A stretch of 64,000 nucleotides of DNA, taken from positions 27,404,001 through 27,468,000 of the forward strand of contig OZ281495.1 in assembly GCA_965637545.1 (NCBI GenBank), given 5' to 3'. This DNA is from Phallusia mammillata (Eukaryota). Made by a program: the position numbers and the translations under genes. Within the stretch, counting starts at the first letter, position 1. The number at the start of each line of letters is the position of its first letter. Below, piece after piece: positions 390 through 62,090 of this stretch. The notes beneath the pieces are model-generated. The model was not told where the DNA came from. It searched no databases and worked only from the letters and a program-made list of their open reading frames with translations.

Positions 390-1220
390 TCAAAAATTCC
401 TCCAATTATGACATGCAACATACTCGTGGATGTAATGAGCCATCTCATCGCTGTTATTCATTGAACCAGACCGTGAAAGATCCGGCATGCTTCTTGTGGA
501 GGAAGATATTGCGGATGTACCAGTCGGAATTGCCGACAGTATGGCTGATACAAAAGTTGAAAAGCTATTACTTGTTTTAGTTAGTTTAGGCTTTATGTGC
601 TTGTGCTTAGGGTCGCAGCATAGACAAACGCCATTTTTGTATGGACCAATTTTGACGGCATGTGTGTTTCTTTCTCCCATAGCATTACACGCTGTTTGAG
701 CAAGGTAGTCATTCCGAAACTCAACATTCAGTACAACCTGAAACGCAACATAAATTGATAAATTATCACAATGACTACAAGCATACGCGTGTTACATCAC
801 TGACGATTACAATGAATACCATACTTGTGCTAAATCATCAGTTGCCAGTGAAGCACCGCCCAAGCTAATAATAGCAGAACATTTTTTGATGTTTCCAAAT
901 CGATTCGCTGTGAGCTTTTGCTTCATCTCTTTGTACAAATCACAAACCATCTTTGCATCATGACTGTGGCAAAACCAGATTAAACTGACTTTGCCACACT
1001 GCTTATGTGTTAGTGCAATGATTTTAACTTCTTTTTTCAATTTTTCGTCAGGATTAATTCCGAACATGCAGTTATTTTTCAAAACTCTATCCACGCCTGG
1101 CTTAAATGTAAGATCAAAAACAGTTTCTTTAATAGTTTTATTGCTTCCTTCGAAGTCTGAAGGGTTGCTGCCTCCTATTCCCGGCACATAATATACATGG
1201 GCATTTGGACAAGTTCCCAT
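390..1220 (-). CDS. Alpha/beta-hydrolase-like family, subfamily A copy A1 (exons 1220-825 and 737-390); C-terminal tail truncated by an apparent 1-nt frameshift
   Basis: Exon 1 MGTCPNAHVYYVPGIGG...WFCHSHGAKMV...LATDDLAQ is 396 bp. An 87-bp phase-0 GT..AG intron (824-738) follows. Exon 2 reads VVLNVEFRND...CLCC...AHYIHEY...WRNF*. Adding one T to the T-run near 392-396 restores a tail homologous to A4, ending at TAG 337-339. Confidence 0.8.
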
Positions 1221-1401
1221 TATTCTTAAAGGAACAAAATTAACCAACTCTGCAGAAAAAAGCATAGTGTTAACAATTTCGCAAGACATTTAAAATTCAA
1301 CTACCCTCATCCACCAAACAAACAATGATAGGCTACATTGAAACTTTAACATTATTTGCAACCAGACACAATGCGAAAGTGAAATATTCACAAAACTAAC
1401 T

Positions 1402-1969
1402 CTACACATCTGTTACGGCATTATGAGTGTCTTCTGTTTTTTTCATTATGCTGTTTACAACATTCACATTGGCCATTTTTCACCGGTCCCATTTTAAAAC
1501 ATTGTTCGTTGTGTGTCCCCAATTGAATTTGCTGTTTTAGGTCGTTTTCACATCCACATTAGGTACGACCTAAGTAACAAAAAGTATTGTACAACCGTGT
1601 TACAGAAAACAGTAGTAAGGAGGTACATCTTTATTACGTGTCCACACCATAGGTTTTTAATTTAAAGCGAAAACGATGTTTAACGTTTAAAATGTTTACC
1701 TGCAATATTGGCCACGGCCAAGGTCACTGCACCTAAAGTGATAATCGCCATTTTGCTGCGGATTTTCTCTGCGTCTTTGATACACTTACTGAATATATCG
1801 ATGATTTGATAGACTTTGTAAACATTTAAAGCTGATCCAATTCGTAATCTAATCGAAAACGTGTTTCTCGCAATCTCGGGGCTTTAGGCCTTGCGTCTAC
1901 CTTTTCATATCCACCCAGTCCTAAACCTACCACAGTTTTGAAATTCCTACACAACTTACTGGTAGTCAT
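1402..1969 (-). pseudogene. Subfamily B pseudogene (B0)
   Basis: MTTSKLCRNFKTVVGLGLGGYEKVDARP...DQL* matches the B3 N-terminus. The HSHG segment is deleted. A donor is present at ~1699 and an acceptor at ~1570. The exon 2 remnant (MGPVKNGQCECC) is frameshifted and deleted. Confidence 0.8.
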
Positions 1970-4900
1970 GATGTGAAACACAAACGATAGACTTAACACA
2001 CCACTCGTAGATGAATCATAAAACCTTCGCGCACGTATACCCCATATAGCAATGAAAGTGAGTTTACAAAGCACATATAGTTTACCCACATTTATATATT
2101 TGCTCACTTACCTCTTTAAACACTAAAGGTTCACGGAAAGGTCATGCGCTTTAGGCTTTGGTTCTTGTTTATTCACGTCGTCAAACAAGGTACCAGGCAA
2201 AAATATGGTACCAGGCAAAAAATATACCAGGCAAAAATATGGGGCGACGATTCACCGATGGGACGTAAATTTTTCCTTATTGATGAAATTCCCTTGCAAG
2301 TAAAGCGAATAACTGCGACGATTTAGTGTTTTTTACTCATTAATTCTGCGACTTGTAATCTATTTTCAAAAAAATTGCTGAAAAAATAGCAATATCGGTC
2401 GACCAATATTTGCTAACACGCTGAACTCGAAGTATCACGTTTAATATTGAACAGCAACATTTGATCCCACTTACGCCTCGTGAAACATCACAGAGCCATA
2501 AAAAATCTTTTGGGGGTTTAATTTATCCTTTTCTTGAAGGTAGCATATACGCCTTAAGACAACTCATTTACTACTAAAATCAGCAGGTAGCCACGTTGGG
2601 CCGTGCTGAGGTTTTACTTTGCTGTTATTTGAGTTGGAATAAGCACGTCACATTGATTAGGAGGCTTATAATATTGTGCGAAACAATGTTTTGTACCAAA
2701 ATCTTGTCAAAAATCAAAATTTTAAGACCAAACTGGTTTTGCAGCAACAACTGTCGTTTGTTATAACAATTGTTATTGTCGACAAGCTGGTATTTTTGTT
2801 GTTTTTGTTTAATAATTAAGTAATGTGGGTCAAGTTTTGTCTAGTATTTTCACTATAATTGTGCGCGTTAAAAGTAGACTGTCTAAGAATGAAAACTGAT
2901 TTCCCAGTCACAAACAGAATGGCATTTATATATTTTATCTGGCATCTTCAGTTCCTACAGAACCACAGGATAAAACATAATAAAAGATGAATAAAAGTAA
3001 TGAAACACAACAAAGTAAAGTGCAAAACCATTATGCTTACACTGCCACTTAAAACAATATGGCGATGAACATTACAAACTGTGCACACTTTACAACTCTA
3101 TTAACCGTAATGTTCAGACAAATGTTAGTAAACGTCTCTATGGGGTTGTTCACCAGAACCAAAAATTCCGCTAGGTGTCAATACCTTCCGGTCATACAAT
3201 GCGCTGGTTTATGCTGGAGACAATAGAAAAAAAAAACATTTTTCGGCAAGCTCTGTCGTTGTTTGGGTTATATTTCTTGGGTCCAAATGTATGTTACCAA
3301 TAAATGGACTACGTATTATTCTTGCTACCTAAGACAACTTTATATAAACTGCAGGTTTACAGTTTCTACAAAAAATCTAAATAACTCACTCAATAAATAC
3401 GCTTTTTAACGGGTTTTTTGTCCTTGGTTTAATAAAAATTTAGCACGTTAATGCTAGATGACTTGCTGCAAGCCTATTGTATTTGTTGCCAAATAGGACT
3501 TACGTACCATTTCAAACCGTCGTTTTCAAAAATCGTTCACTAATTCCAAGACAATTTTGCGTTTGATATTTAGCAAAAAACAAACAGTGGGTGTTAACAG
3601 ACCAGACTCCCCGGGATTAAAGAGAGTGGAAATTAATTTAAATATACAAGCGAGATAATTACCACCTGCAAAGGTATTCAAAAATATGCGTTAGATAAAC
3701 GACAAAAAAGGACATAATAAAGACACGCATTCGGACATATCTCATTAGGTGTTGGCATTGACATATTCCTTTCTGTTTAAACTGAAGATCTGCTTATGCA
3801 CCCAACTGTAGAATACCCCACCATCCACCAATTGTCTCAAAAGGATTTATCGCAGCCATACTGGACGGCCAATACTTAGTTACAATGTCGTCCAAATGTT
3901 GTTGTGCGTAATTGGATACGCAGGTTCCTCATATTTCCTATGACATGTTACGGTGCTTTGAGCCCAAACACACGAAACCCAGCACCCTCGTTTTATTCAT
4001 TAACAGAAAACAGCACAAACATAAAAGTGAAAGGTCAACGCAGAAATGTTTATTAAAAAATCCGTGCTTGGCTCTCCCACGCATGGTTGTATTAACTTCG
4101 CAGAAGCGTTCTGGTTGTATTAAGTTCGCGGAAGCGACAGCAAGAAATGTCAGCACAATTTGTTGGACAACATAGGAAAAAATGGACTGATTTCATCTAA
4201 AGTTGATTTAAAACTGAAAATGGCGTCGTGAGTTACTTGATCTAATTATCACTCTGTTTCTTCTGCCTTTTAGCAATGTCATTTTACTTCGCTGTTCTGA
4301 AACACGAGAAACAGTTTAAGATCAAACACACGGGCAGTGAAATTGTTTCTTTTTTGGCAAACGTATGTGACTATAGTGACGACACTGATAGTCACTAACA
4401 AGACTGAGAAAAGTACAACAATAATTTGTATTGTCAGTAAACCTGTCTAAAACCGTGGGCATATACAGAACTGTAAACAAATTGCGGTACTTTACTGCCC
4501 ACTAGCGAGTACTTTCTAGTTGGACAAATTGCGCTAAGTAGTACGTTAAACTCCTATTTTCGATTAGCAATATTGTGCGCAGGTGGCAAAATAAATGTAT
4601 TAAATCAAGACCAATTAGCACCCAAAGTTACGTTAGAAGTTTACACAAACATACGACGTCACTCAAGCACCGATCAAACACATGTGCTCGCCAACAATGA
4701 CCTAGTTCTCTTGTAAGGAGGTTGCTTGAAAAACAGTCTCGAGAAAATCCATTACCAAAGGTTAATTTCAAAGACGTCGAAGGAATAGGTGTTGGTTTTT
4801 ATAATCGAGGCAACGCGCTGTAATGCCAAGCCGACGCAGTGATTGCGTTTAAAACAGAATTGGGTAAACAAAAGCCATAAAGTAAAAACGGTGGTAATAG

Positions 4901-6311
4901 AAACCAACAAGCGCAAGGCAGAAAACAACAACAACAGAAACTGAATGATGGAACGAAATAATATTATTAACATATTGTGACAACAAACAGTGGCAAAAAG
5001 AAATACAGTAAACAGAATTAACATTACTCCATAAGATTTATGCAAAATTGTATGATAACAAGACCCTCTTAATAATGAAAAAAGTTTTACATATCTTGCC
5101 TAAAACAGTAATACCACTACAATATACATAGACTACAAAAAGTGAGAAATGTCCCTCTAATTCCATAAATGTAGACGACTTGTCGTTTTAGTTTCAGGTT
5201 CTACGTCAATTCGTCCATGCTATGGTCACAGCATCGGCAAGAGCCATTTTGGTATGGCTCAATTCCGAGAACAGTCTCAATTCCAACTTTGTTTAGCAAT
5301 AATTAGTGAAGTGCACGAGCGAAGATTGCATGTTTAACCAGTAAAAGCTACAATGTTTAAATAACACACAAAATACCTAACAGAGTACTTTGTAACCATT
5401 AAACTCTATTAAATATTATTATCTCTCGCCGAAATCTACAGGCAAGAAACAAAGCAAAAAAAACATATTTTCGTTTAAGCTATATACGTGTAGAACATCA
5501 AAAGCGCATATTTTCGCGAAGAATATAAATATTTATCAAAATGGTCATAATTGACAAAAAATGCAACAAAAAATGAAAAGCATCAGCAATAACGTAGAAA
5601 ACATAAAAATGTATTTGCATTCGAGATGTTTAAAGGTTCAACGCAAAACAGTCAGATTTCGGTTTTGCGATTTAGTAGCCACGGTTTTGGAAAATATTCT
5701 AAACAAAAACCCGCAATGCAAAACAGTTGTCATCAACAGCGCGTGCATGTGAATCTATCTTAATGAGATGATTGATATGTTAGGCAGAAACTAGAGTAGT
5801 CAATTGATAATTTGCCCTGAAGTTTAATTTGTCCTGAAGTTTACATTTTCAGTTATATACGTGTCTTGAACATAAAAAGCGCATTTTTATAATTGCGGCA
5901 AGGAGTTAAAAACTGTATCTCACTGTTTAAATTCAGTAAGCGGCCGAATCACATTTGCCAATTAAAAAAAAATGTAAAAAAACTCGAGTAGTGACGCTCG
6001 AGAGTATTGACGTCAGAAAAAGAAATAATGTAAGCGTATACGTGATAAACGTACACATATTGATAGTTACAAAGCACAATAGTAACGTTACAACATACGC
6101 CGTAACTAGGCTGCAACAAAAAGCATCGGCTAAAAACAAAAAGTGTTTACATTCGATATGTCCATAGGTTAAATACAAAACAGTTAGATTTCGGGTTTGC
6201 GATTTAGTAGCCACGGTTTTGGAAAATATTCTAAATAAAAAGTCACATTTTGAAACAGCTGTCATCAACAGCATCTGCATGTGAATGTATTTCAATGAGA
6301 TGGTTGATGTG

Positions 6312-6695
6312 CAGGGTTGCCATACCGTCCTTATTTCTGAGATTTGTCCTTATTTTGAAGGACAATGTCTTAAAAAAATGTATTGTCCTTATTTCTAAGA
6401 AATGTCCTTCTTTTTGACTTACGTAATTATTTTGTCTTATTTTTAACAATCACAAGTCAAATCCCTGCTACAAGTAAAAGTAAACCAAGACCCGAGCTGT
6501 CGTGAGATGCACAAAGTTTTTTTTTAACAAACAAGGAGTTGCTGGAACAAACTCTTTCTGGCCAAACATTTCGCATGTGATATGTCATGGCTCGTATAAA
6601 TGAAAAGATCTATTCGAAAACGTTTGTATCCTTTCGTATGGAAACTTAGTTTTTCGGGTGTCCTTAGTTTCGGCTCCGTGACGATGGCAACCCTG
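6312..6695. mobile_element. hAT-type MITE (TIR CAGGGTTGCCAT) inserted in the last codons of A2
   Basis: 12-bp perfect TIRs; 8-bp TSD TTGATGTG / TTGATGCG. The paralogous empty site is in A3 at ~14905-14925. Confidence 0.85.
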
Positions 6696-7564
6696 TTGAT
6701 GCGTTAAGCAGAAAATAGAGTAGTCAATCGATAATTTGCACTTTAGTCTTTTTCTCCACTCACGGCACCAAACATCATTGTTGACGTAATATGCTGTTTC
6801 TCTGCTGGTTGAACTGGATGAAGAATTTGATGTGCTCTTTTCTGAAGCCTGGGATGAGATATCAACGCTGATAGATGCTAAGACCCTGACAACTCGACCC
6901 ATTTTTTTGTTTATAGTTTTGAATTCAGGGTTTATCGCTTGATTTGAATCACAGCATTCACAAGAGCCAGATTTGTATGGTCCGATTCGAAGGACGGTCC
7001 GTCCGCACCTTTGTCCGTAAAGGTTGGACCCTCCGACTGCCACGTTGTCGTTTCTGAACTCAACATTGAATACCACCTGAAATACAAAGTAATTTTCATA
7101 ATTGTAATACTGATGGATCACAAATTAATACATTATAAAACACATTTAACTGTCATATATACCATACTTGCGCTAAATCATCAGTTGCAAGTGCAACACC
7201 ACCCATGCAAATAATAGCTGAACAATTTCGGATTGCTTCGAAATGTCCTGCTAGTAGATTTTGCTTCATCTCTATGTACGAATCACAAACCATCTTTGCA
7301 CCATAACTGTGGCAAAACCAGAACAAACTAATTTTGCCACATTGCTTGTGATTTGTGCAAACATTTTTAATTTCTTCTTTTAATCCCTTGTCAGGAATCA
7401 ATCCGAAATTGAATCTACTTGGGAAAATTCTTTCAACCCCAGGATTAAACTCAAGACCAAAAACAGTTTCTTTTATGGTTTTGAAGTTTTCTTTAAAAAA
7501 CTAAAAAGTCTTTGCCTCCCAATCCCGGAACATAATAAAGATGAGCTTTTGGACAAGTTGTCAT
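6585..7564 (-). pseudogene. Subfamily A copy A2, disrupted (exons 7564-7168 and 7076-6585)
   Basis: Exon 1 is 397 bp versus 396 in intact copies, a +1 frameshift near 7495-7510 giving an early TAA. The catalytic His motif AHY has become AYY. The 3' end is interrupted by a MITE. Confidence 0.8.
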
Positions 7565-7767
7565 TATAGCAGAGAATAGCAGCTGTAAATACCTATGTAT
7601 AAGACATGAAAGTTTTTTTTTAGTTTGACAAATTAGAACATTAATAACTTAGTATTTGCTACAAAATAATTGCAATACACCAAAACTATTTAATAGTACA
7701 CCAAATATACGAATAAATTAATATAACAACATCACAAATGTAAAAGCATATGAGCCAATAAATGATA

Positions 7768-8132: not shown

Positions 8133-9063
8133 TTACACTTCGGTTGAAATATTTTCAATGTATTTTGCCACACAAGAACAGTTGTCACCTAAACCGACAT
8201 CTAGTTCCTGTCTTAACTTAATTCTCCAGGTTCGACAGGCTAGATAGTCACCGATAAAGTGCCCACCAGGCTTACTTGCGTGCGAAACCATGCCAAAACC
8301 TTTCCAAATGTTCCGCACATTGTCCAGCAAAGACTGTTCTGTTTGTTGATCATTAGGTTCAGCGGTCTGCTCTTGCGCAACCTCATCACGACAACATTCA
8401 CATAGGCCATTTATAACCGGTCCAATTTCTACAGAAGAGTGATTTTTGTGTGTTCCCATACCAACCAATGCTGCTGATTTGGATCTAATGTCATTTTTAC
8501 ACTCTACATTAAGGACAACCTGAAACAAAAACAATAAAATTTTACTGTGGTAGGACAGAAATACACAAAAAAACTCCATCACGTATAGTTTTAAATAAAA
8601 TAACAGATATGTTTTTATATACTGGTTTATTGGTGGAAAACGTTTTTACCTTTGCAAGACTGGGTTCAGCAAACGTCACTCCACCCAAAGTGACGACCGC
8701 CATTTTGTTTCGGATTTTATCTGCGTCTTCTTCTGAAATGTCTTTGTTAATCTCATTGATGTTTTCTACGAGCATTTTTGCCCCATGACTGTGGGCGAAA
8801 AACACCAAACCAATTTTGTCGCAAGTCTGTTTCAATAGCGTTTTTATCAGTGATTTGATAGAATTGCTAAGATCTTCGTCAGCCGAAGTTTCTCCAAACA
8901 CACTAACGAAGTTACTCTTGTTTGTTAAAATCTGAAGTTGATCCGATTCGTAATCTAATCCAAAAATTGTTTCTCGCAATCTTCGGGCATCAGGTCTTGC
9001 GTCAATCTCATCATATCCACCAAGTCCCAAAATTACGACAGTTTTGAAATTTCTACACAGCAT
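8133..9063 (-). CDS. Alpha/beta-hydrolase-like subfamily B copy B1, intact, 266 aa (exons 9063-8650 and 8519-8133)
   Basis: LGLGG, FFAHSHGAKM, VVTLGG | VVLNVECKND, CECC, GHFIGDYLAC. The 130-bp phase-0 GT..AG intron gives no stops after splicing. The start could lie further upstream, as the frame is open to 9195. Confidence 0.85.
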
Positions 9064-14897: not shown

Positions 14898-15757
14898 TCA
14901 ATGAGATGGTTGATGTGTTAAGCAGAAAATAGAGTATTCAATTGATAATTTGTCCTGAAGTTTTATTCTCCAGTTACGGCACCAAAGATAATTGTTGGCG
15001 TAATGAGCTGTTTCTCTGCTAGTTGAACTGGTTGAAGAATTTGATGTTCTCTTTTCTGAAAACTGGGACGAGATCTCAACGCTGATAGATGCTAAGCCCC
15101 TGACAACTCGAGCCATTTTTTTGTTTATAGTTTTGAATTTAGGGTTTATCGCTTGATTTGAATCACAGCATTCACAAGAGCCAGATTTGTATGGTCCGAT
15201 TTGAAAGACAGTCCGTCCGCACCTTTGTCTGTAAAGGTTGGACCCTCCAACTGCCACGTTGTCGTTTCTGAACTCAACATTGAAAACCACCTGAAATACA
15301 AAGTAGTTTTCATAATTGTAATATTGATGGATCACAAATTTAACTGTCACATATACCATACTTGCGCTAAATCATCAGTTGAAAGTGAAACACCACCGAT
15401 GCAAACAATAGCTGAACAATTTCGGATTGCTTCGAAATGTCCTGCTGGTAGATTTTGTTTCATTTCTGTGTACGAATCACATACCATCTTTGCACCATGA
15501 CTGTGGCAAAACCAGATTAAACTAATTTTGCCACATTGCTTGTGATCTCTGCAAACATTTTTAATTTCTTTTTTTAATATCTTATCAGGTTTCAACCCGA
15601 ACTGGCATCGATTTGGCAAAATCCTTTCAACCTTTGGATTAAACTGAAGACCAAAAACAGTTTCTTTTATGATTTTTAAGATTCCTCTAAAGTCGGAAGG
15701 GTTTCTGCCTCCCAACCCCGGAACATAATAAAGATGAGCTTTTGAACAAGTTGTCAT
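14898..15757 (-). CDS. Subfamily A copy A3, intact, 262 aa (exons 15757-15362 and 15290-14898)
   Basis: MTTCSKAHLYYVPGLGG...WFCHSHGAKMV...LAQ | VVFNVEFRND...CECC...AHYANNY. The intron is 71 bp, phase 0, GT..AG. Confidence 0.85.
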
Positions 15758-15913: not shown

Positions 15914-16840
15914 TTACACTTCCGTTAAAGTCTTCCCAAAGTCCTTTGCCACACAAGAGCAGTTGTCACCTAAACCGACCCCTAGTTCCCCTCTCAACTT
16001 AATTCTCCAGGTTCGACAGGCTAAATAGTCACCGATAAAGTGCCCACCAGGCTTAAATACGTGCGGAAGCACCCTAAAACGTTTCCATATGTTCCGCACA
16101 TTGTCCAGCAAAGACTGTTCGGTTTGTTGATCAGTAGGTTCAGCGGTTTGCTCTTGCGCAACCACACCACGACAACATTCACATAGGCCATTTATAACCG
16201 GTCCAATTTCTACAGAAGAGTGATTTTTGTGTGTTCCCATACCAACCAATGCTGCTGATTTGGATCTAATGTCATTTTTACACTCTACATTAAGGACAAC
16301 CTGAAACAAAAACAATAACATTTTACTGTTGTAGGGCAGAAATACACAAAAAGGAAAATTTCCATCACGTATAGTTTTAAATAAAATACCTAATATGTTT
16401 TTGTTTATTGTTGAATACGCTTTTACCTTTGCAAGACTGGGTTCAGCAAACGTCACTCCACCGAGAGTAACGATAGCCATTTTGTTTGGAAGTTTTTTAG
16501 CGTCTTCTTCCAAAATCTCATTTCTTATCTTGTTGATGTTTTCTACGAGCATTTTAGCCCCATGACTGTGGGCGAAAAACACCAAACCAATTTTGTCGCA
16601 GGGCTGGTCCGATAGCGTTTTTATTAGTGATTTAATAGATTTGCTAAGGTCTTCATCAGCTGAAGTTCCCCGAAACGCATTAAACAAATTACTCTTGTTA
16701 GTTAAAATCTGAAGTTGATCCGATTTGTAATCCAATCCAAAAATTGTTTCTCGCAATCTTCGGGCATCAGGTCTTGCGTCAATCTCATCATATCCACCAA
16801 GTCCCAAAATTACGACAGTTTTGAAATTCTTACACAACAT
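15914..16840 (-). CDS. Subfamily B copy B2, intact, 266 aa (exons 16840-16427 and 16300-15914)
   Basis: Same motifs as B1. The 126-bp intron is in frame and stop-free, which explains the continuous 330-aa ORF in the track. Confidence 0.85.
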   Translation of the reverse strand: MLCKNFKTVVILGLGGYDEIDARPDARRLRETIFGLDYKSDQLQILTNKSNLFNAFRGTSADEDLSKSIKSLIKTLSDQPCDKIGLVFFAHSHGAKMLVENINKIRNEILEEDAKKLPNKMAIVTLGGVTFAEPSLAKVKAYSTINKNILGILFKTIRDGNFPFCVFLPYNSKMLLFLFQVVLNVECKNDIRSKSAALVGMGTHKNHSSVEIGPVINGLCECCRGVVAQEQTAEPTDQQTEQSLLDNVRNIWKRFRVLPHVFKPGGHFIGDYLACRTWRIKLRGELGVGLGDNCSCVAKDFGKTLTEV

Positions 16841-20338: not shown

Positions 20339-21293
20339 ATGTCGACATTGTGCAAAAAAGCAGATGTGTATTACGTTGCTGGCTTAGGGGGTATAAGTGC
20401 TCGTGATTATGAAGGCATTTTAAAGCAACTTATCGAGACCATATTTGGTCTTCTTTTTGAACCTAAGGCCAAAATATGTACAAACAATAGCTGGCTTTTG
20501 TCTCAAGATAAAGATTTGACTACGAATATCAAAAAGATCATTTCGGTTCATCGTCATTGTGAACATATCAGCATGGTTTGGTTCTGTCACAGTCATGGAG
20601 CCAAGATGGTCTGCGATGCTTACAAGGAGCTACAAGATAGACATGATTTTGACCGGATACGGAACAGTTCTGCCATAATTTGTATCGGCGGTGTTTCGTT
20701 GGCAGAAATGGATTTGGTTAAGGTAACAAACATTTACTACTTAACTTTACTTTTAAGTTAAAATTCAGCTACATTACAATTGTTTTCATGAACGTGTTTC
20801 AGGTTAATTTTCCTGAATACAAGATAACCTTCCATTCACATATTTAAAATGTCATGTTTTTATGGTGTAAATTTGTAAAACAATGCAGTTGAACAACATT
20901 GTAATTGTTGCCTTGCAACGCATTGACTCTACCCTTACTCGTATTTAGGTGGTCTTGAACGTCGAGTACAGGAACGACCATTTCTCACAAGCTAGCTCTC
21001 ATCTTCATGGCAACAGAGATAACGCAGTGGTATTCGAAACTGGTCCGTATAAAAACAAAATGTGCCAATGTTGCAGTGGTTCACAAGACCCCGGAATAAA
21101 ATATGCCGAAACCCAGATCAGTACTGGGCTTTTTTGTAGCTTGTCTGCCAGCTCCAAGCAGAGTTCGGCATCATCTTTCGACTACGAAAAGGCGCATATT
21201 ATTCAAGAATATATGGCATGCAAAACGTGGCGTATCGAGGTACAACGCCTTCTTCCGCTAAGTAAAGCCGACTGTGACATGCATTTTCAATAG
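20339..21293 (+). CDS. Subfamily C copy C3, intact, 242 aa (exons 20339-20722 and 20949-21293)
   Basis: Same motifs as C2; 226-bp phase-0 GT..AG intron; no stops. Confidence 0.85.
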
Positions 21294-44735: not shown

Positions 44736-47451
44736 TCTTTTGTTTCACACTGTGAAGCCCTAATGGACAACTTGTTTTTTCTGCACTGTTGGCTGTTAAA
44801 TCCCGGTTTCTAATTTATGTATATTTTAGTGTTTTTTTTTAGTGTTTTTGTGTGTTTTAAGACTTTGGGGATAACATTACTGTTCGTACGTTTCTTCTGG
44901 TTATGCATTGTTTTTCATTCAGTAAAAATCGATAATAGCTATTGCTGAATATTGTGTAAAAGTTATAATGCTTACATTATATTGCATGTAATCAGTTGCG
45001 AACGTATCTAACATCTTGTATTTATTTAGATTGTTCAAATATTAACATATTTACTCCGTTTAACTGATTGAAACTCTTGCTTTTGTAACGAAAATTTTCA
45101 TTAGCTGTATACAAAAGCAATTTTAAACTACCTAGCTGTCCGAGCATTTTTACGTATAGTATTGTCTTCTAAGTCTGCCGGTTATTTTTATACCAGTACC
45201 AAACATTTTTACGACGCAAAATCCGAAACACCAAGGAACAGTAAAGAGCTGCACTGGTTAGTCTATCCAGATCTGAGGCTACTAAGCAGAGACTGTACAC
45301 TGCGTTTTTATAAAGATTGGTTCTGCTGGTACGCGCCCAATTTAACTGCGGCGGGCGCATAAATGCGCCCCGACACATGCCTGGTTCTAAACAGCGATAA
45401 AAATCGTATTAGAGCGGATATTTTTTACAACTGGGGTGCGTTTGAAAGCTTATGCATATTAGCTTCAATTTATTCGAAAAAAATGATATGTTAGTATTTG
45501 AAAAAAATTAATTACACCAAGGAGAAAGTCAAAATTCAGAAAAAACGTGTTTTTTTCTAATTTATGTTTTGCAGCCATTTTTTGTTATTTTACGCTTGGT
45601 TGATTACCACACAGCTGTTTGGAGTTTGTTTCAGGGCTCTGTAAGGGCGTTGTGGCGATCTTTGTTTACAATTTGATGTGTGTTCAGCTGAATTGGGCTT
45701 GAAAGTGGGTAGTTTTGGGCAGTAAATTTGCCTTGGTTTGCTTGATTATACTGCTGTATCAGTCAGTTTAGCTTTACTATTCGTGGTGAAAGCAGTTATT
45801 TATCAAGAAAACAACTGTTGTAGAAGCATTTTGACTTAGGAAGTTTGTGGTTGCTGACCAATATTTTGATTATATCTGGTCCTCAACTGCATTTACATTG
45901 CCAAATGGTAGGATTTGGCCTCATGAATGGACAACAAATACAGAAGAATCAGGGCAAAGTACCTTGGGAATGCTTGGAATTGTGTTTTTTCTGCTAACTT
46001 CTGTGAACTGTGTTTCAAACTTGCACATGTTGTGGTGTAATGATACATAATAAACATCCCATGTACAAACACTTGTAAATGAATTATGTGTGTACAGGTA
46101 TTTAGTAAACGTTTGAATAAGTCCGTAAATTGTCAAGATTGCCACAAATCATTATTGAAAACAAGTTTCATACGCTCAAAAACATTAATTTTATCCTTTA
46201 CTACAGAAAAATAAGAAACTAAAATTGATCATTATGACGTCATGAGCTAATTAATGACGTCATCGAAAAAACACACATCAAGTTTTGTAAGGAATTGTTT
46301 GTAAAACAACTTGGAACTAATAATTGTAACTAAAAACACCGATAAACTGCAATTTTATGGAAAAATAGAATTGAAATGACGTCATTTCGTAAGTGATGAC
46401 GTCATCGAAAATTTTTTTATCTTCAATTTGATTCTGTTGATTGGTAGATCAACTAGACTACTTGTGAAAACATATTGAACAAACAAACTCTCCGCAGGCG
46501 GAAACAAAAAAGCAGAGGTGGCGATTGAATGTATGAAATTTGCTACCAAGTTGTCGGATGTGCATGTATGACGAAAATAAACCATTACCAACGTATATAG
46601 ATCATATTTGCTGTAATGAATGCAATAATTAAAAAAGACCAGGCTAGGCCTTACACTTTTCAAATACTTTATCATCTTGCTTTTTGTTGTGGTACTTGTG
46701 TTTCATTTTAAATAAAATGAAGATTTTTACACAAACGTGATTTTAGGTGTTATTATTAAGCAGCTTAAACTAACCAACTTTATAGGTGTTGATCCCAGAT
46801 ATATTAGTTTGATAATGATCAGGATGAAACTGGGCCTATACCTCCATGGGCCGGATGGGTGTTTTACCTTTATATCTTTGAAAAAGTAGTCTAGTTGTTT
46901 AAACAACCATCAAAATCCGCTTGAAAAGCCTATGTCTCACGTAAACAAAACAAAAAGATATCGCCCCTTTTATGTCGTCGCTAAACGGGCAGTGTGCAGT
47001 CTCTGTTAATTGGTCTATGGTTTAACCAAGACAGTTACCGCGGATCAAAGTGATATTTTCTGAGCATTAATTTAGGACTTTCTGCTACCGACTAAAAGTG
47101 CGATTCACAAAATCAAAGTTGTTCATCAAAAAGATTTTTAATGAATATACTAAGGGCTTTACAAAAAAATTTGAGTCGATTTATTTAACAACTATTGCTC
47201 AGAAACAATTTAAGTTGTAAAAAGGTTGCACAAAAATTGTTTCAAATATGACAGCATCCTTGCAAACTGCAAGAATCGGCAAACTGTGTACAACATGATA
47301 CAGAGCAGCTCTTTGCTGCCGCTTGGTGTTTTGGATTTCACAGCGTAAAAAAATACTCGGTACACAAAAGCACCAACAAGAAATCACAAAAATATACATA
47401 GTGCAGAAAAAACAAGTTACCCATTAGGGCTTTACAGTGTGAAAGAAAAGA

Positions 47452-50400
47452 TCATTTAATGTGTGTTTCGAATGTTTTACTTTTCGATGGTGGTAAAAGC
47501 GCTTTAGCTACCGTTTTCCAGTTGTCGCATAAAATGTATTCCTCAATGTGATGAGCAGCACTTTTGTCCTCAAGGAACAAAAAAAGTGGCGCAGTCGATA
47601 CAACCGTAGCTACCCGATGTAAAACGTTTTGTGCTTTTGCTGTTACTCTATTAAATCTCACCTCGTAAACCGTAGATTGATCAACCGACCGACAATTTGG
47701 GTTACAACAACAGCAGCATCATATTCCCGGACAACATGGACAGCATGTGATTTTCGGACAACGCTTACAACAGTACAGTTCGCTGCAAAAGTTAAAATTT
47801 GTGCAACAAGCAAACAAAGAAAAATTGTTTCCAGTTGCAGAAAAAACTGAACCACTAACTGCAGAGCCAGATAAAGCAAAGGAAAAATGCATCGAAGAAG
47901 AAGTGGACTTTCAATCAACAAATAGAGGTGCCCTGTCTGAGTCTGACGTTAGCGACAACCAAATGTTCCTGTTTTTCCATACACTTCCGGATGATGTCCA
48001 GCGTCGATCTGTCCGTGACACGTGACTGCCATTCAAGAAGTCATACGCTGCCGACCACGATATCTTCGCCCCTCCACCTTCCCGGTAAGCACCAGATGTT
48101 CCAATTGCTTCTTAATCACGTGGCCGAGAAATCGAACCTGTCTCGTGACGATAGTCCGCATCAATTGTCTTGTTGTTCCAGCCCACTGCAGCACCGTGTC
48201 ATTTCGCACTTTCTTCGTCCAGGGTATGCCCATCATTCTTCGCAGAAACCACATTCCGCTTCCTCCAGGCGATTCTCCGTCGTTTGGCTGATGGTCCAAC
48301 ACTCACAGCCCCATACGAGACACGGCCACACATAGCATTTCAAGAGCCGAAATTTGGTTGTAATGCTGATCGAGCGAGAGGTCAGAACGCTTTACATGTT
48401 TTTGTAGGCAGTCTTTGCATTCCAATGCGCCTGCGAATATCTATGTCGCACTTTCCTGTCGATGTTTACGTGCTGCCACAGTACTGGAATTGACTGACCT
48501 GATCCAGCACTCCCTTCACTGTGATGTAGCACGGCGGCGTGGAAGGCTTGTTGGAGAAAACCATCACAAACGATTTTCTTTTGTTGATGGTAAGCGCTTT
48601 CATTTCACTTTTCTTAACCGTCTTGTTCATCATGTTCTGCAGCTTCTCTTCTGTGTCGGCGATAAGTACAGTGTCATCGCCGTATCTCAGGTTATTGATA
48701 TTCACCCCGTCAATGATGAAACTTTTCAGATCTTTGATGTGGCCCATTATCATTTCCGTGTAAAGAGAACAGGTCTGGTGACATGATACACCCTTGCCTC
48801 ACTCGGCGTTCGATGTTTACCTACTCACTCAGCGCACCATCTATCCTAATTGTTGCCTGCTGGTTCAAGTACATTTTCTTGATCAATTCGATGTCCTTCC
48901 CGTCGATATCCAATGTCTCCAGCATTTCAATCAACGGTTCGTGCCTTACTTTATCAAACGCCTTGACATAATCGATGAAACGGGCACATATATCACGCTG
49001 CATTTCAATTGCTCGCTCTTTTATCATCCTCAAAATAAAGATGGCGTTCCGCGTACCCTTATCCGAAGTGAACCCGTACTGCTCTTCACTTCTCCAGTCG
49101 TTCTGCCTCGGATGCTGTTAATTAGAATCCGAATGACAAGCTTCGTGATGTGACTCATGAGGCTGATGGTTCTATGTTGCTCACATTTTGTGGCACCCGG
49201 TTTCTTTTGTAAGGTGATGAAAACAGATTTGCACATCTCCGCTGAAAAATGACCTTCATCGTAGATTCGATTCGCTGGCTCTGTTATCGTTTCGACTCAA
49301 AAATAGGCAAGAGTTTCGATCATTTCCATTGCGATCCCGTCCGCGCCAGTTGCTTTGCCTCTCGATAGACTCTGTATGGCTCGTTCGGCCCCATCTTTAA
49401 GTATCAGACTTCCTCCAGTCTTCTTAATATTAGGCCGTGGTCTTCTGTCATCAGCAAACAGTTCTCCTATGTACCCTGTCATCTCTTCAGGATCTCGTCT
49501 TTCTCCATAATAATGGTACTGTTATTCGCCTCAATACAGCTGAAGGTTCAACTTTTCTGCCGCCATATTACTAGCCGTCATTCTTCGTGCACCCGCTGTG
49601 GGTTATTGCATATCAGGAGCTCAACATTTCGGACTGTAAATGTTTTCTTCTAATTAATACTTGTCGCGGATTGTTCGATCCAGCCGCCTGTACTCCGGTG
49701 ACTTCCTTTTAAGCTTCCGGCGTTTGTTCATCAGTTCAAGGATTTCCGGTACCATACAATCATGATTTGCGAAACGGGTGACCGTTTGTACCACTTTCTC
49801 TGCAGCTTTCGTCATTACATGCGCCAGTACACTAATCTCTAAGTGTCTTCTCCGTTGTCATTCAATAAACAACCCCGTACCATCGTCTGATATTGGCTTT
49901 TTACTGTGTCGTCCTTCCACAACATATTCAGATCGAGCTTTGGAGCTTCGCTTTGATGATCTTCTTTAGTTTAAGCCTCATGGTAGCTACTAGAAGTACA
50001 CGGTCAGTATTGCAATCAGCGCCCGCGTAGCCTTTTACAATCAGGATTGAATTTCGGAAACTTCGGTTGATCCTGTGACGTGCACTGTTTCAGCGCCTTG
50101 TCTAGATCGTCATAGAAATCATCCAGTTCCTTCTCACTACTGCTGCTCGTCGGGGCGTAAACCTGCACTATTGCGATGTTGAAAGGTTCGCCACGCAGGT
50201 TCACCATGATCACTTGATCTGAGATGATCCAGTAGCTCATCAAGCTATCTTTCTCCGGGCCCGAGTAAACGATGGTAGTGTCACCGTCTTTCCTGATAGC
50301 GTCAATCTGATTTCACTGACTCCTAAGATTTTGATATTGACTCTGCACAAGGAGCCCCAGTTCCCTCCCGCCGGAGCTTTTGTCGAGGCTTGCTCCTCTA

Positions 50401-50880
50401 AATCCGCTCAGATCCCCTACCGAGGTAGGTTTTTGTAGCTTTCGTTAAACAACTCATGCCATTTTTACTTCCATATTTCCATCACTTTGGCATGATAAAC
50501 CAAAACTTATGATTTTAGTATTTTTACTTGTGATTAGAGTTACATGTGTAGATCAACAAGAAGGAAAGTTACAATGTATCCCAGTTTCCCTTCACTATTT
50601 TTACCGTTTAGCAGCAAAATTCAATTGACTATTTTATCTTTGCCAGTGATTCCGCTGAAAATAAAGCCACACTAATGCAAAAAAATTGTCTAGATTGTAA
50701 GATGCTGATTTGTCTAAAATTGAAAGATATTCTTCGGGGTTTAAATCATCTTTCAGTTCCTTGTAAGCTTGACAAACCATAGTCGCCCCGTAACTATGGC
50801 AAAACCACACCAGATTAACGTACTTTTTACAGTGCAGGTGAACCTTTGTATTCGTTGTAACCCCAGTCGTCAATTCCACG
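47452..50880 (-). pseudogene. Subfamily D pseudogene (D3) split by an RTE LINE
   Basis: The 3' half of exon 2 lies at 47452-47910 (AHHIEEY, Cys tract with TGA). An exon 1 fragment lies at 50634-50880 (WFCHSYGATMV) with its donor lost. Confidence 0.8.
47927..50430 (-). mobile_element. Degraded RTE-clade non-LTR retrotransposon (AP endonuclease + reverse transcriptase)
   Basis: Fragments: IVQVYAPTS (APE), KCEQHRTISLMSH, FIDYVKAFDKV, INNLRYGDDTVL (YADD equivalent), FLRRMMGIPW...FLGHV...GRRYRGRQR. Many frameshifts; locally higher GC. Confidence 0.9.
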
Positions 50881-51439
50881 TGAGCAAATATTTGACAACA
50901 CGCCGAACTGGAAGTTGAAGGTTAATTATCGAACTACACTTGAGCTCGCTCACGCCTCGCCAAACAACGTTAAGAACAATAAAAGCCTTTTTTTCGAGGT
51001 ACACTATGCTTCCAGTGGTGGTTCAATTGGTGGCCCATAGCTAACGTTGTTACATTTTAAGGCCCTTTAACGATTTATTTATTGTTCCTTTTTGAAACCT
51101 TAACCTTTGCAACACAGCCCAATCCTTAAGCCTACTTGTACTTGATGTTTGCAACGTTCTTCCAAGCGCATTGTTTACTTTACATGGCCCAAAATCGATT
51201 GACCATCATGGTAGGCTACTTTTAGAAGTCACTTAAAACATCGGATAATAATGTATAGGAGGGGTAAAAAAGTCGATAAGTAAAACTTGAGCTTGTGGTC
51301 AAGCTAGAATGTTTGGAACTCGTTGCAGGGCAGAACCGAAGATGGCTTGTAAGGCTTGCAAAAATGTATAACGTGCATAACAACAATGTAAATGTATAAC
51401 GTGCAAAGTTTTCAAAAACCGTAGAAACGTACACTATAC

Positions 51440-55993: not shown

Positions 55994-56869
55994 TTAGACA
56001 TAAAAGTCAGACGACCCAACATGTTTTGGAGCCGGAAAAAAACAAGGTTCACGGTAATGGATGTCGCATATCCTTTTCTTTGAGAGTGACAGCAGTTCTT
56101 GCACTTTTTTTCGCCAATTTTTGCATTTGAGATACTCCCATATATAATGGGCCTTCCTAGCAGACTGGTCCGTTGATCTATGGTTTTTGGATCCAAGGGC
56201 GCTTGGGAAACCAACTGAAAATCCTTGAGCAGTTCCTCCTGCCGCTTCGTTTGTATTTTGTAGCTCGGGTTCAATGGATTTGTTATTGCAGCACATACAA
56301 TACCCGTTTTCGATTGGGCCAATGTTGAAAATGTTACCGTCACGCTCTCCAATCATGTATGACCCACCTCTCGCATACTTATCATTTTGAAATTCCACGT
56401 TGAGGCAAACCTAAAGTAATCAATTTTATCTATTTCCCAATTACTTGAAAAACCTACTAATGTGAAAACACTTTTGCTTATAAATCGTCCAATAAGTAGT
56501 TTGGTTCATTATTTCATTAACTTGTGTTATAACAGATAAAGTTGAGATTACCTGCGCCAAAGATTCAGTTGCAGTAAAAACTCCCCCAATGCATATAATC
56601 GCCGAACTGACTCTCAAATTTTCGAAGTTTTCGGAAGCTCTATCAAACTCTGCATATGCTTCACAAACCATCTCATTCTTTAGCGAATTGTCCGACTTTA
56701 ATCCAAAACGGCAGTTGTTGTTTAAAATTGACATTACAGTCGGTTTAAACTCCAGACCAAATATCGTGTCGACGATGTGGTTAAAATGAGGACTGAAAAA
56801 AGAAGAGTCAGTTCCTCCCAATCCAGGAACAAAATATATACTGGCGTTTGGACACAAATGCTTGGACAT
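55994..56869 (-). CDS. Divergent A-like copy (A6), open frame of 244 aa lacking the HSHG nucleophile (exons 56869-56552 and 56410-55994)
   Basis: MSKHLCPNASIYFVPGLGG...SLKNE/MVCEAY shows a ~26-codon in-frame deletion relative to A4. The 141-bp intron and exon 2 (NVEFQND, CMCC, AHYIWEY) are intact. Confidence 0.75.
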
Positions 56870-58501
56870 GTTTCGAACATCCACAGTACAAATATTTTGG
56901 TGAACACCAAACTTAAACACGTTCTTTCGCAAGCATAATTGGATCCAATTAGCTTTCAACAGGTCAATGAAGAATTGTAAAACAAAACATTTTATACACG
57001 AGTTTAAGCATGCCAAAAGTATTAAGCTGAAAAATACTTGTAGTTCAGTGAAAACAGTTTCGTCAGAAATTTTATGTTTAGTTTAAAAGGTTCAATTATT
57101 TATTTTTGTGTCGCACTCGTTTTTTAGACTTCAATCTGGCTAAACATTTCTTTTCTATCAGCAATATCAGCTTCACTGCGCAAACGAGGGAAAATGAAAA
57201 GAAAATAGTTGCAACACTGGCGCTAAGTTATTCACCTGCTGCTTTTGAGTGGTTCTAATATGTTACCTTCACGAATCAGCGCATCGGTTCACTTGGTTGT
57301 GTGGCGAATTTTTAGCACTTTCACCGTTTGTAATAATGAGCTGGTTAACTCCTTTATTTTCACACACCTACGTGCACTTATAATCGTTTTGTTTGAAGCG
57401 TTGCCTATTGGGTATCCTGGCGCTTAACTCTGTTATTATTGTTGTGTTTAATTGGTTTGTTTTGCCAATCATATTTTCACCATATCATATTTCCACGGCA
57501 TATATCTTGTTTTACCACACACTGTATATATCTTGTTTTACTACACACCATTCACCTATTTGTTTTATATTGTAATAGTTGTCTTTTCTCCGTTTGTATG
57601 ATCGCCCTTTCCCCGCCACTAATTTACGCTTGATTGTTGTATCGTTACCCGGGTGTGCCTTTGGTCGTCACGTGATTGTTTCTTCCACGTACGTGGCCGC
57701 GTCGCACGTGCGAGTAAAATAATGAAGGTCAGTCTTCCTCTGGGCGCCGTGCGAGTTACACCTGTTGGTTTCTGTTCTGTGTTGTACTGGCGTTTACTGA
57801 TTATTGAGCGCAGCGTATTGAAGTTGGAAATACGTGTTGTTTTACGCCAGTGTATTTTATCGCTTTTACTTAAACAAGGCGCCCATTAGTGAAACCAGTT
57901 TGTGGTCTTTCTTTGGCTTAGTGGTGAGCCGTTATTGCAGGGTTCGGGCCGTTTCCGAATTAGGGAGGCAGTTTTGGTTTTAAAGGTACAGAATTAGGCT
58001 TAAGGGGTTGATTGGAATTTAATATCGCCACTTGAAAGATCTCTTAGCCGAATTCCCAAAGCTGCCGAAATAATTCCGTAACAGTTGCATCAGAAAAGGA
58101 CGTTACGCCGATGGTTGCTGAAAAAAAAAACAACTCTACGACAAAGTCAATGCCGTTGGTTTTTACACTGAGTCAAGCATTTGTTGGACTGCCATGATGC
58201 GAGTGAAACACACAAGCATGGCTAACTAGGTTAGAATCACTGCAGATTTCTACATAAATAAAAGTTTGAGTAAAAGAAGATAAAACGAGCTGAGATTGAT
58301 TAACACCTGTAGAGTGCAATAAAAAATGTGTCATAAACAAATTTAATTAAAGATACTCTATTTGGGCTTCAAATTTGGACTAAAAAAACTAGAACATTTT
58401 AACAAGTTATCCACGAAATTGCCGTAAACTACAATACTGCAAACTTTCCATGAGTGTTGACTTCAATTCTGTTTTTGTTACAGTGCTTACACAGCAGCAG
58501 C

Positions 58502-59892: not shown

Positions 59893-59998
59893 GGACAGAA
59901 AGTTGGCCGAATGGTCCAGCGCGCCTGACCCATATACAGACATAAAAACCCTGATCGGGATTAGTGTCCTGGGTTGGAACCCCGTGAAAAAAAATAAA
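59893..59998 (+). mobile_element. tRNA-derived SINE-like repeat (extra 3' half at ~60060-60100)
   Basis: TGGCCGAATGG, GGGTTGGAACCC and A-tail; matches the other copies. Confidence 0.55.
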
Positions 59999-60511
59999 AA
60001 ATAAAAACAAGACAATAATACGTAAAATGAACAGAAACTTGACCCTGACCGAGATTTGTCCAGGGAGTGCCCTGGGTTCGAACCCTGTGAAAAGAAAAAA
60101 AAAAAAACAGTAATACGTAAAATTCTCTTACAGCTCGGTAACAAATGTTTCTGTATACAGCTATTTCAAACTTTCGTTACAAAAGCAAGCTTTTTAATCA
60201 GATAAACAAAGTAAATAATTTAATAACTAATCATTTTGAAATAATACAAGATATTAGATACGTGCGGTAACTGATTACATGCGAAATGATGACAGCTTTA
60301 TAACCTTTACACAGTAATCACCAATAAGCGGTTTCTACTGAATAAACAACAATACATAAACAGAAGAAACGGTCCCCTTAGTCTTAAAATACACAAAAAC
60401 AATAATAAGAAATCACTAAAATATACATCTGTTCAAACGAACGCGATTAAGTGGCCAACAGTGCAGAAAAAACACGTTGTCCATTGGGGCCATTTAGTGA
60501 GAAACAAAAGA

Positions 60512-62090
60512 TCATTTAAAGTGCGTTTTGCATGTTTTACTTTTCGATCGCGGCAAAAGCGATTTAACAACAGTTTTCCAGTTCTCGCATAAAATGTATT
60601 CGTCAATATAGTGAGCTGTACTTTCGTTATTTCGAGGAACAAAAAAAGTGGTCGCAGTCGATACAACTGTAGCTACCCGATGTAAAACGCTTTGTGGTTC
60701 TGCTGTTATTGTAGTAAATTTCGCCTCGTAAACCGTAGATTTATCAACCGACCCACAATTTGGTTTACAACAACAGCAGAAGCATTTTCCCTGACAACAT
60801 GGACATGCAATTTTCGGACAACACGTACAACAGTGCAGTTCGCCACAAAGGTTAAAATTTGTGCAACAAGCAAACAAAGAAAAGTTGTTCCCAGTTGCAG
60901 AAAAGACTGGACCATCAACTGAAGAGCCAGATAAAGCAGAAGAAGAAGAAGGCACCGAAGAAGAAGTAGACGTAACCCCAGATGAAATACCTCTACTTCT
61001 TGTATTTTTTGGTGTTCCTTTACTTCCGTTACAGCACGTACAAACTCCATCCTTTAGTGGACCAATGTGTTGTAACCTACCCTTTCCACTCCCGTATAAA
61101 ATTCTCCCAGTCCTGGCGACATCATCGTTCTCGAATTCAACGTTTAAGACAACCTTAAAAAGATCACACTGATATGGTTGAGCAAAATCGAATTAAGCCA
61201 TGGTGCAAAACTCCATTTGATCTTCGTAGCTTAAACATCTCACGTCATTTCTGTACAAAATCTATTTTTTTCCACCACGTGGTGGAAAAGCCATATACAT
61301 GGCATGATAATCAAAAGGTTGTGATTTTAGTTTACTTGTAAGCATGATTAAGTGGTATGTGTAGATCAACAAGATCGAAAATTAATGCCTCCGAGTTTTT
61401 CCTACCGCAAAATTCCTGTCGGTTTGAATAAAATCTTTGGCGACACTAAACTGTTGGACTGATTGACAGTTTTAGGACGATCTGAACCGTAAAACCGTAC
61501 AGAAAGCAATTAAAATGAAACCTTAGTGTCCCACAGAAAAATGCTAAAATTCCGGACATTGGGAGTGTTTTAGAAAAATATTTCCGGATATAGATTTTAC
61601 GCCCTAATTTCGGACATGTCCATCAATTTCATCACGTCTGATAACCCTAGTTTAGCTGCAACACTCAATGGACTCTTACCGTTGCCAGTGATTCCGCTGC
61701 ACATGAAGATCCACCGATGCAAATAATTGCTGATTTGTTGAAGATTAGAAGATATTCTCTGGGGTTTAAAACATCCTTTAGTTCCTTGTAAGCTTGACAA
61801 ACCATAGTCGCCCCGTAACTATGGCAAAACCACACTAGACTAACGTACTTTTCACAGTGCTGGTGAACCTCTACAAGTGTTTTAATCTCAGTAGTCAATT
61901 CCACGTCAGTTTTTATTCCATATTGGCAGCGATTTTTCAATATCTGTACTTTACTTGACTTAAATTTCACGCCAAAAATACTGTCTCTGATGCTTTTAAA
62001 AGGCTCTCTAAAATCATCTGGATTGTTTCCTCCCAATCCAGGGACAAAATAAAGACAAGCATTAGGGCAGATCTTCTTCGGATTTAGCAT
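60512..62090 (-). CDS. Subfamily D copy D4, intact, 350 aa, Cys-rich (exons 62090-61680 and 61153-60512)
   Basis: YFVPGLGG, WFCHSYGATMV | VVLNVEFEND, CTCC, Ser-rich then Cys-rich tract, AHYIDEY. The 526-bp phase-0 intron splices to an open frame (5' part of exon 2 translated by hand). Confidence 0.85.

Follow-up and report, generated by a model that had tools for sequence, protein, structure and literature searches.

A tunicate-restricted family of putative alpha/beta-fold serine hydrolases arranged as a large tandem array in Phallusia mammillata

The 64,000-nucleotide stretch of the Phallusia mammillata genome analyzed here (GenBank assembly GCA_965637545.1, contig OZ281495.1, positions 27,404,001 to 27,468,000 of the forward strand; hereafter the window, with positions counted from its first letter) carries a large tandem array of two-exon genes. 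These genes constitute a new, unnamed, and tunicate-restricted family inside a very well-known superfamily, the alpha/beta hydrolases. The best explanation, held here with good but not full confidence on the strength of sequence comparison and predicted structures, is that they encode sea-squirt-restricted serine hydrolases of the alpha/beta fold, of the lid-less and minimal lipase or esterase type. On the same kind of evidence, it is likely that they are active hydrolases, and their sequences suggest that they are probably located inside the cell.

Loci were counted by tblastn searches with the exon peptides of each subfamily (one exon pair per subfamily) together with a six-frame motif scan of the window. 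This places 23 loci within positions 393-62090 (Table 1), bearing out the array described in a first-pass annotation of this DNA, although its count of about 24 loci was slightly high. The four divergent subfamilies of that description, here A to D, are recovered, together with one divergent A-like copy, E1, which it had not set apart. Ten loci are intact, with both exons fully open (A1, A3, A4, B2, B3, B4, C3, C3b, C5, and D5), the same number of intact or near-intact coding sequences as previously proposed. E1 is open but lacks the nucleophile elbow, being a pseudoenzyme or a decaying copy, and the remaining 12 loci are dead, with stops, frameshifts, or fragments only.

The list of six-frame open reading frames (ORFs) contains a recurring pair of peptides, namely an N-terminal piece of about 130-140 amino acids that carries G-L-G-G, [C/A]-H-S-[H/Y]-G, and I-C-I-G-G, and a C-terminal piece that begins with V-x-L-N-V-E and carries N-D, G-P, C-x-C-C, and [A/G]-H-x-I-x-E-Y-x-x-C. 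All the motifs by which the family was first noticed (GLGG, [C/A]HS[H/Y]G, I(C/T)(I/L)GG, NVExxND, and [A/G]HxIxxY) are present in the window alignment, and the proteins of the array would have about 240-350 amino acids. At every locus with readable ends, exon 1 finishes in L-A-[QKET] and is followed at once by GT, and exon 2 starts with a valine codon (V.[LF]NV[ED]) right after a pyrimidine-rich tract and AG. Thus, the common phase-0 intron claimed earlier is seen as a single intron at one homologous position, with a length of 71 to 526 nucleotides. Also in agreement with the earlier claim, no N-terminal signal peptide is present, the first beta-strand beginning within about 10 residues of the methionine in all N-termini. 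The Ciona proteins described below, which were annotated independently, start at the same place as the window proteins.

A particular case is the intron of B3 (16301-16426, minus strand), which has 126 nucleotides, is in frame, and is stop-free, so that the gene reads as a single ORF of 330 amino acids. This read-through is probably a coincidence, given that stops interrupt the introns of the sister copies B2 and B4.

The first 34 kb of the window is built from a three-gene cassette, A (minus), B (minus), and C (plus), present in several copies that include the spacers, which corresponds to segmental duplication. For example, positions 8117-10484 match 15898-18313 with 83% identity, 6695-7740 match 14909-15910 with 86%, and 25163-26155 match 32468-33448, also with 86%. 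To the right of these cassettes lie the D copies and E1, along with a further C copy. The array grew by tandem and cassette duplication, and in P. mammillata the family has expanded strongly at this site, with genes dying rapidly.

Relatives of the window genes are few. The 37 members of the family alignment, the exon pieces, and the B3 read-through ORF were searched against Pfam and NCBIfam, and nothing was found above threshold. A word-indexed search of 5.8 billion proteins gave no match for the 330-residue B3 ORF, and only three proteins, all already known, for the wider family alignment (alignment A2). HMMER with a profile of the window exons against 1.84 billion representative proteins returned 14 clusters at an expectation value (E) ≤1e-3; no member was found at this threshold in other annotated animals, nor was there any bacterial sequence match. 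The named proteins among these clusters are encoded by Ciona intestinalis LOC100183761, LOC100185416, and LOC144745994 (XP_002129320.1, XP_078496027.1, and XP_078488667.1; profile E 1.4e-13 to 1.5e-10), all of them annotated as "uncharacterized protein", and the other clusters consist of ORFs without a name, drawn from Logan assemblies and marine metagenome contigs. The description of the family as unrecognised, resembling no animal family that could be named, therefore holds, since no Pfam or NCBIfam model passes and no relative has a name apart from the three uncharacterised Ciona genes. No literature on the family was found by the Ciona locus names, the accession numbers, or the topic of tunicate-specific hydrolases.

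The three Ciona proteins have in common with the array the HSHGA elbow, the N-D motif, CxCC, and AH[FY]xx[DE]Y. Moreover, their genes have two exons, a tandem layout, and a phase-0 intron that interrupts the same codon boundary as in the window; in the gene examined at the Ciona tandem locus, this boundary reads M-V-K, then GT...AG, then V-T-R-N-F-F-F. However, they show 20-28% identity to the window proteins, form a separate clade, and have a degenerate G-L-G-G loop. In the C. intestinalis sequence AP043574.1, at about 6.72 Mb (contig L005, 6417-11221), three tandem copies, one of them partial, have as neighbors a choline-transporter-like gene, a TSP1-repeat gene, and APC, and LOC100185416, a fourth gene, is found on a different large contig. 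Ciona thus has at least three tandem copies at one locus and one more gene elsewhere, against the 23 loci of the Phallusia window. Because both the family and its intron are found in Ciona, the family with its intron must be at least as old as the Ciona split.

Also, the sequencing run DRR090687 provides one contig with a B-like gene that has the same intron and another with an A/C-like exon 1. In a maximum-likelihood tree of the exon-1 domain, the first of these proteins falls in the B clade (support 93/93) and the second in the clade of A, C, and D (85/95), and the Ciona proteins, together with the metagenome protein P0013, form their own clade (96/92). This placement indicates that the split between B and A/C/D predates the window species.

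With respect to the fold, the sub-threshold Pfam matches of the 37 members correspond to DUF900 in six members, to Cutinase in two, and to Lipase_3, DUF676, PGAP1, Abhydrolase_8, Thioesterase, DUF1749, LIDHydrolase, and Hydrolase_4 in one member each; all of these matches fall on the elbow region, and most belong to the alpha/beta-hydrolase clan (CL0028). The neighbors found with a protein language model are of the same kind and mostly bacterial. A sequence search of the PDB with a single window protein gave no match, and only the profile of alignment A2 found the yeast serine hydrolase YDR428C (PDB code: 1vkh; E 3.6e-4). In this case, the G-x-G loop after the first strand of the family is aligned to H-G-G, and the H-S-x-G-A elbow is aligned to G-H-S-V-G-A.

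The structure of the Ciona homologue P0006, predicted by AlphaFold2 with alignment A2, has a predicted local distance difference test score (pLDDT) of 79.7 and a predicted template-modeling score of 0.81. Foldseek retrieves 52 PDB chains for this model at E≤1e-3, and all 50 of those listed are alpha/beta hydrolases, including APT1, cutinase, LipA, and 1vkh. VIA-align gives Z scores of 12.4-12.5 to Bacillus subtilis lipase A (LipA) and to Lip_vut1, followed by cutinases, LCAT, PA3859, and SOBER1 at 10.8-12.2, with 158-171 residues aligned. The alignment to LipA and Lip_vut1 covers 158 of 179 residues, reaching in the model from residue 11 to 270 and including the first strand as well as the last helix, with a root-mean-square deviation of 3.2 Å. 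Among Swiss-Prot models, the matches of P0006 are APT1, Culp1, EstA/EstB, cutinases, and kynurenine formamidase. In AFDB clusters and the ESM Atlas, its neighbors are DUF676, DUF900, DUF726, and "fungal lipase-like" proteins, together with the C-terminal domains of bacterial RHS, PAAR, and WapA proteins.

The B3 model, predicted with the in-frame intron read through, has a mean pLDDT of 58.9 and is confident for exon 1 only (pLDDT 80-92), which is modeled as strand, helix, strand, helix, strand 84-91, Ser92, helix 93-108, and strand 121-126. Foldseek gives for it a mix of Rossmann-like folds at E≥5e-3, which is not decisive alone, and VIA-align gives the same kind of matches as for P0006 with Z scores of about 8. 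Nonetheless, the profile match to 1vkh, the Ciona model with matches to alpha/beta hydrolases only, the clan of the sub-threshold Pfam matches, and the positions and invariance of Ser, Asp, and His all agree, and the alpha/beta-hydrolase fold anticipated from the motif order is solid at the level of predicted structure.

In the P0006 model, the chain passes from strand 98-105 through Ser106 into helix 107-117, Asp160 comes directly after strand 151-157, and the last helix, 251-268, is directly preceded by His249, with a pLDDT of 67-92 around this histidine. The aspartate comes after the next-but-one strand from the serine, and the canonical order of nucleophile, acid, and histidine is kept. 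The elbow reads [A/C]-H-S-[H/Y]-G-A in the intact copies, with A1 (CHSHD) as the exception. None of the three triad residues varies among the members whose sequence reaches them, except that P0013 has a cysteine in place of the serine, which is the expected substitution at a catalytic nucleophile, cysteine being the usual alternative. This protein, with A-H-C-H-G-A, comes from eukaryote-like contigs (L007-L009) with a guanine plus cytosine (G+C) content of 0.39 in marine metagenomes. As for the complete Ser-Asp-His triad first claimed, its order, its secondary-structure positions in the predicted model, and its invariance stand, and from these a working triad is predicted.

On this basis, the family would act as lid-less serine esterases, lipases, or thioesterases inside the cell, in the manner of LipA, cutinase, or acyl-protein thioesterase. 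The serine of [A/C]-H-S-[H/Y]-G would be activated by the histidine of [A/G]-H-x-I-x-x-Y and the aspartate of the N-D motif after the NVE strand, and then would attack the carbonyl of an ester or thioester, with the G-L-G-G loop and the residue after the serine as the putative oxyanion hole.

Among known families, the best structural match is given by B. subtilis LipA and Lip_vut1 (PDB codes: 1i6w, 1isp, and 6nkc; Pfam Lipase_2), which like the new proteins are small and lid-less. We take LipA to share with them the Ala/Cys-His-Ser-x-Gly elbow, instead of Gly-x-Ser-x-Gly, and the G-[LI]-G-G loop after the first strand. The likeness to LipA is confined to structure, with 14-15% identity, and Lipase_2 (PF01674) has no match in any of the 37 members at E≤5. 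Moreover, in comparison with LipA, the new family is an animal gene with an intron, lacks the signal peptide, and adds a CxCC hairpin, a disordered linker of 30-120 residues, and six or seven cysteines. On the other hand, cutinases and the thioesterases APT1 and SOBER1 (PDB codes: 1cus, 1fj2, 6qgq, and 6avv) are compact hydrolases with an exposed active site that reach the top Foldseek E values (9e-5 to 1e-3) and VIA-align Z scores of 10.8-12.2, with an identity to the family of 10-16%. APT1, a cytosolic enzyme, deacylates cysteines, and cutinases are secreted and disulfide-bonded. For Cutinase (PF01083), the two members with weak matches stay below threshold (21.4 bits versus 25.9 in the distant member P0003), and for Abhydrolase_2, there is no Pfam match but only fold matches (Foldseek E 9.4e-5; VIA-align Z about 11 for PA3859 and SOBER1).

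The commonest sub-threshold Pfam matches are the putative serine esterases DUF676 (PF05057), DUF900 (PF05990), DUF726, and PGAP1-like proteins. The best E value for DUF900 is 0.0055, and that for DUF676 is 0.0073. All the matches stay below the gathering scores, with 12.1-13.4 bits among the scores listed for DUF900 (gathering score 20.5) and 16.3 bits for DUF676 (20.3). The nearest predicted structures of the DUF676/DUF900 type in AFDB and the Atlas have template-modeling scores, by query, of 0.53-0.57. These DUF676 and DUF900 matches cover the elbow region only and belong to uncharacterised families with no function to borrow. As for class-3 lipases, to which the family had been likened, the superfamily and the order of motifs are the same, and some AFDB neighbors are "fungal lipase-like", but the new proteins are much smaller, have no lid, and are matched better by LipA and cutinase structures. 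No window protein matches Lipase_3 (PF01764), and the best score in the wider family is 21.7 bits, again in P0003, against a cut-off of 22. The first comparison is thus kept for the superfamily and the motif order and replaced for the nearest structures, which are of the LipA/cutinase type and of the DUF676/DUF900 type.

Column statistics reveal a second invariant set in the family, formed by six or seven cysteines. In C3 numbering, they are C5, four residues after the methionine; C75, ten residues before the elbow histidine; C168, C170, and C171, which form C-x-C-C after the G-P turn; C220, eight residues after the catalytic histidine; and a cysteine at the C-terminus. However, P0011 and P0014, the most divergent full-length members, have neither the first two cysteines nor any of the CxCC hairpin, and P0014 is also without the cysteine after the histidine, yet both keep the triad. 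This joint loss suggests that the cysteines are one unit separable from catalysis. The first two map to the N-terminal ends of the first strand and of the elbow strand, or just ahead of these ends, so if the strands pair in the canonical order, they would occupy a sheet edge remote from the active site. From the sequences, a separate structural unit, in the form of a metal site, disulfides, or a cluster of acylation sites, is plausible.

The segment between CxCC and the catalytic histidine is disordered in the P0006 model (residues 203-243) and wholly different between subfamilies: B has a short version, those of A and C are rich in Ser, and D carries a long string rich in cysteine. In this last case, runs of CC, CxC, and CCCC extend over about 40 residues (D5, 60620-60955; D2, 42000-42270; D3, 44386-44739; D4, 47452-47883). 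The insert has no Pfam match and is, in our view, reminiscent of multiply S-acylated cysteine strings. Probably this hypervariable linker would set the location or the partner rather than the chemistry, and the D subfamily might be tethered to membranes through acylated cysteines. Also, P0014 alone, of the pair from contigs L001 and L010, has a hydrophobic N-terminus resembling a signal peptide, for which reason part of the wider family may be secreted.

The intact copies within one subfamily show ratios of nonsynonymous to synonymous substitution rates (dN/dS, Nei-Gojobori) of 0.31-0.58 at dS of 0.2-1.1, and so they have been under purifying selection since their duplication. Copies of different subfamilies are 30-46% identical in amino acids, with dS at saturation. 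Indirect support for real genes comes from the Ciona homologues, annotated by NCBI as two-coding-exon genes, and from the contigs of P0011 and P0014. The latter look like complementary DNA because, on short contigs, their ORFs run uninterrupted across the intron position and one of the contigs ends in AATAAA followed by adapter-like sequence.

Several observations weigh against active hydrolases encoded by functional genes. Half of the loci are dead, the elbow of A1 is spoiled, and E1 has none. The strong fold match derives from the model of a Ciona homologue whose identity to the window proteins is only 20-28%, and the C-terminal half of the B3 model is poor (pLDDT below 50), partly because the intron was read through. 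Since no Pfam family is reached at threshold, the substrate class cannot be taken over from a known family. Moreover, 14 RNA runs labeled with the same species contain a fraction of only 0.00-0.01 of the words sampled from two stretches, and contigs of four of these runs, compared with positions 20300-25700, cover none of C3b, A4, and B4, although these four contig sets are small (16-34 million letters), so that lack of cover does not show silence. The sole RNA-contig cover in this interval falls on a repeat at about 21750-22470, with a similar copy at 10978-11434. There, the summed word depth reaches 1254 and many contigs continue into unrelated sequence, so it looks like a dispersed, transcribed repeat.

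An alternative explanation is that the proteins are noncatalytic binding or scaffold pseudoenzymes that retain the alpha/beta-hydrolase fold, the function being carried by the cysteine unit and the linker. The cysteines at the N-terminus, before the elbow strand, in CxCC, and after the histidine are as invariant as the triad, the linker is hypervariable, and both the open but elbow-less E1 and the CHSHD of A1 would be expected from such proteins. However, the intact members, which come from at least four sources, all share Ser, Asp, and His, and the only change of the nucleophile, from Ser to Cys, is what selection on catalysis predicts. Moreover, P0011 and P0014 lost all the cysteines yet kept the triad. 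Accordingly, this explanation is considered unlikely, and serine hydrolases remain the preferred reading.

A second alternative is that a bacterial lipase or toxin domain was transferred horizontally into tunicates and domesticated as a fast-evolving effector, for example, in immunity. It would account for the many bacterial proteins among the closest AFDB structures (RHS, PAAR, and WapA C-terminal domains, and DUF676), for the mostly bacterial language-model and Atlas neighbors, for the absence of the family from all other annotated animals at the HMMER threshold, and for a gene structure with one intron only that undergoes tandem birth and death with many pseudogenes. Nonetheless, none of the 1.84 billion representatives is a bacterial sequence match at this threshold, and the signal peptide of a secreted effector is absent. 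DUF676-type folds occur in eukaryotes too. Because the phase-0 intron and the tandem layout are common to Ciona, where the copies stand beside ordinary host genes, any transfer would be ancient, before the Ciona split. We regard this explanation as quite unlikely in its complete form, and for horizontal transfer as such, the evidence points neither way. A more elaborate version would be a DUF676-type or polymorphic-toxin lipase domain of bacterial origin, acquired before the ascidian radiation, that received in animals a cysteine cluster (for metal binding or multiple S-acylation) and a hypervariable targeting linker beside the histidine, and then diversified by tandem birth and death as intracellular or membrane-tethered effectors such as de-acylases or immune lipases; this is a long shot.

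Finally, the high copy number and the many dead copies could suggest the cargo of a transposable element instead of a host gene family, a very improbable reading that is rejected because the subfamilies are old (30-46% identity) and under purifying selection, duplication proceeded by local three-gene cassettes with their spacers, no transposase adjoins the copies (only a reverse-transcriptase remnant, between the D4 exon remnants), and the Ciona copies stand in tandem between the choline-transporter-like gene, the TSP1-repeat gene, and APC.

Table 1. Loci of the hydrolase-like family in the window (ex, exon; aa, amino acids)
Locus	Positions	Strand	Exons and state
A1	393..1220	-	Open; ex1 825-1220, ex2 393-737; elbow CHSHD (Gly to Asp); short C-terminus
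B1	1454..1972	-	Broken B-type; stop, frame change, partial exons
Exon-2 fragment	5189..5323	-	2 stops
A2	6588..7564	-	Broken A-type; exon 1 with frameshift and stop; Tyr at the catalytic His position
B2	8136..9063	-	Intact; ex1 8650-9063, ex2 8136-8519; 266 aa
C2	9516..10435	+	Broken C-type; frame changes, stops
A3	14901..15757	-	Intact; ex1 15362-15757, ex2 14901-15290; 262 aa
B3	15917..16840	-	Intact; ex1 16427-16840, ex2 15917-16300; 266 aa
C3	17281..18264	+	Intact; ex1 17281-17667, ex2 17923-18264; 243 aa; Ser86, Asp139, His212
C3b	20339..21290	+	Intact; ex1 20339-20722, ex2 20949-21290; 242 aa
A4	23610..24534	-	Intact; ex1 24139-24534, ex2 23610-24050; 279 aa; long Ser-rich linker
B4	24726..25676	-	Intact; ex1 25251-25676, ex2 24726-25106; 269 aa
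C-type exon-2 fragment	27703..27837	+	
A5	30145..32140	-	Broken A-type; frame changes in both exons; elbow SHSDG
B5	32353..32925	-	Broken B-type; exon 1 with 4 stops; exon 2 remnants
C5	33559..34519	+	Intact; ex1 33559-33933, ex2 34178-34519; 239 aa
D1	39903..40331	+	D-type exon 1 with 3 stops; exon 2 not found
D2	41135..42414	+	ex1 41135-41545 open; ex2 from 41791, in-frame stop 42268-42270 ahead of the His motif
D3	43538..44739	+	Broken D-type
D4	47452..50891	-	Broken D-type; exon-2 remnant 47452-47883, exon-1 remnant 50703-50891
E1	55997..56890	-	Divergent A-like, both exons open; HSxG elbow segment deleted
C6	58496..59375	+	Broken C-type; frame changes in both exons
D5	60515..62090	-	Intact; ex1 61680-62090, ex2 60515-61153; 350 aa; elbow CHSYG; Cys-rich insert between CxCC and His

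Other features of the window were also recorded. The reverse-transcriptase remnant is a decayed ORF on the minus strand at 48466-48753 (RVT_1, 29.4 bits versus a cut-off of 29.6), and the interval 48000-50000, between the D4 exon remnants, reaches a G+C content of 0.46 versus about 0.37 elsewhere. A 389-bp insertion between loci A2 and B2 contains an inverted pair of type I hammerhead-like motifs (7769-7818, minus strand, and 8065-8114, plus strand). Each motif scores 22.8 bits with Rfam Hammerhead_1 (E 0.0056), under the gathering score of 34, and for this reason the pair was missed by the Rfam scan of the whole window, which gave no match at gathering thresholds. A scan of the window for transfer RNA genes found none.

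The fold and the likely chemistry of these proteins are ordinary, the novelty being the family itself, in which the cysteine unit and the variable insert are unusual. An invariant Ser-Asp-His set is joined to a second invariant set of cysteines, with a hypervariable, disordered segment right before the catalytic histidine, and to our knowledge such a layout has not been described for minimal lipases. The alignment could seed a new alpha/beta-hydrolase family in databases of the Pfam type, and the family itself is a testable candidate for tunicate-specific lipid or acyl-protein biochemistry.

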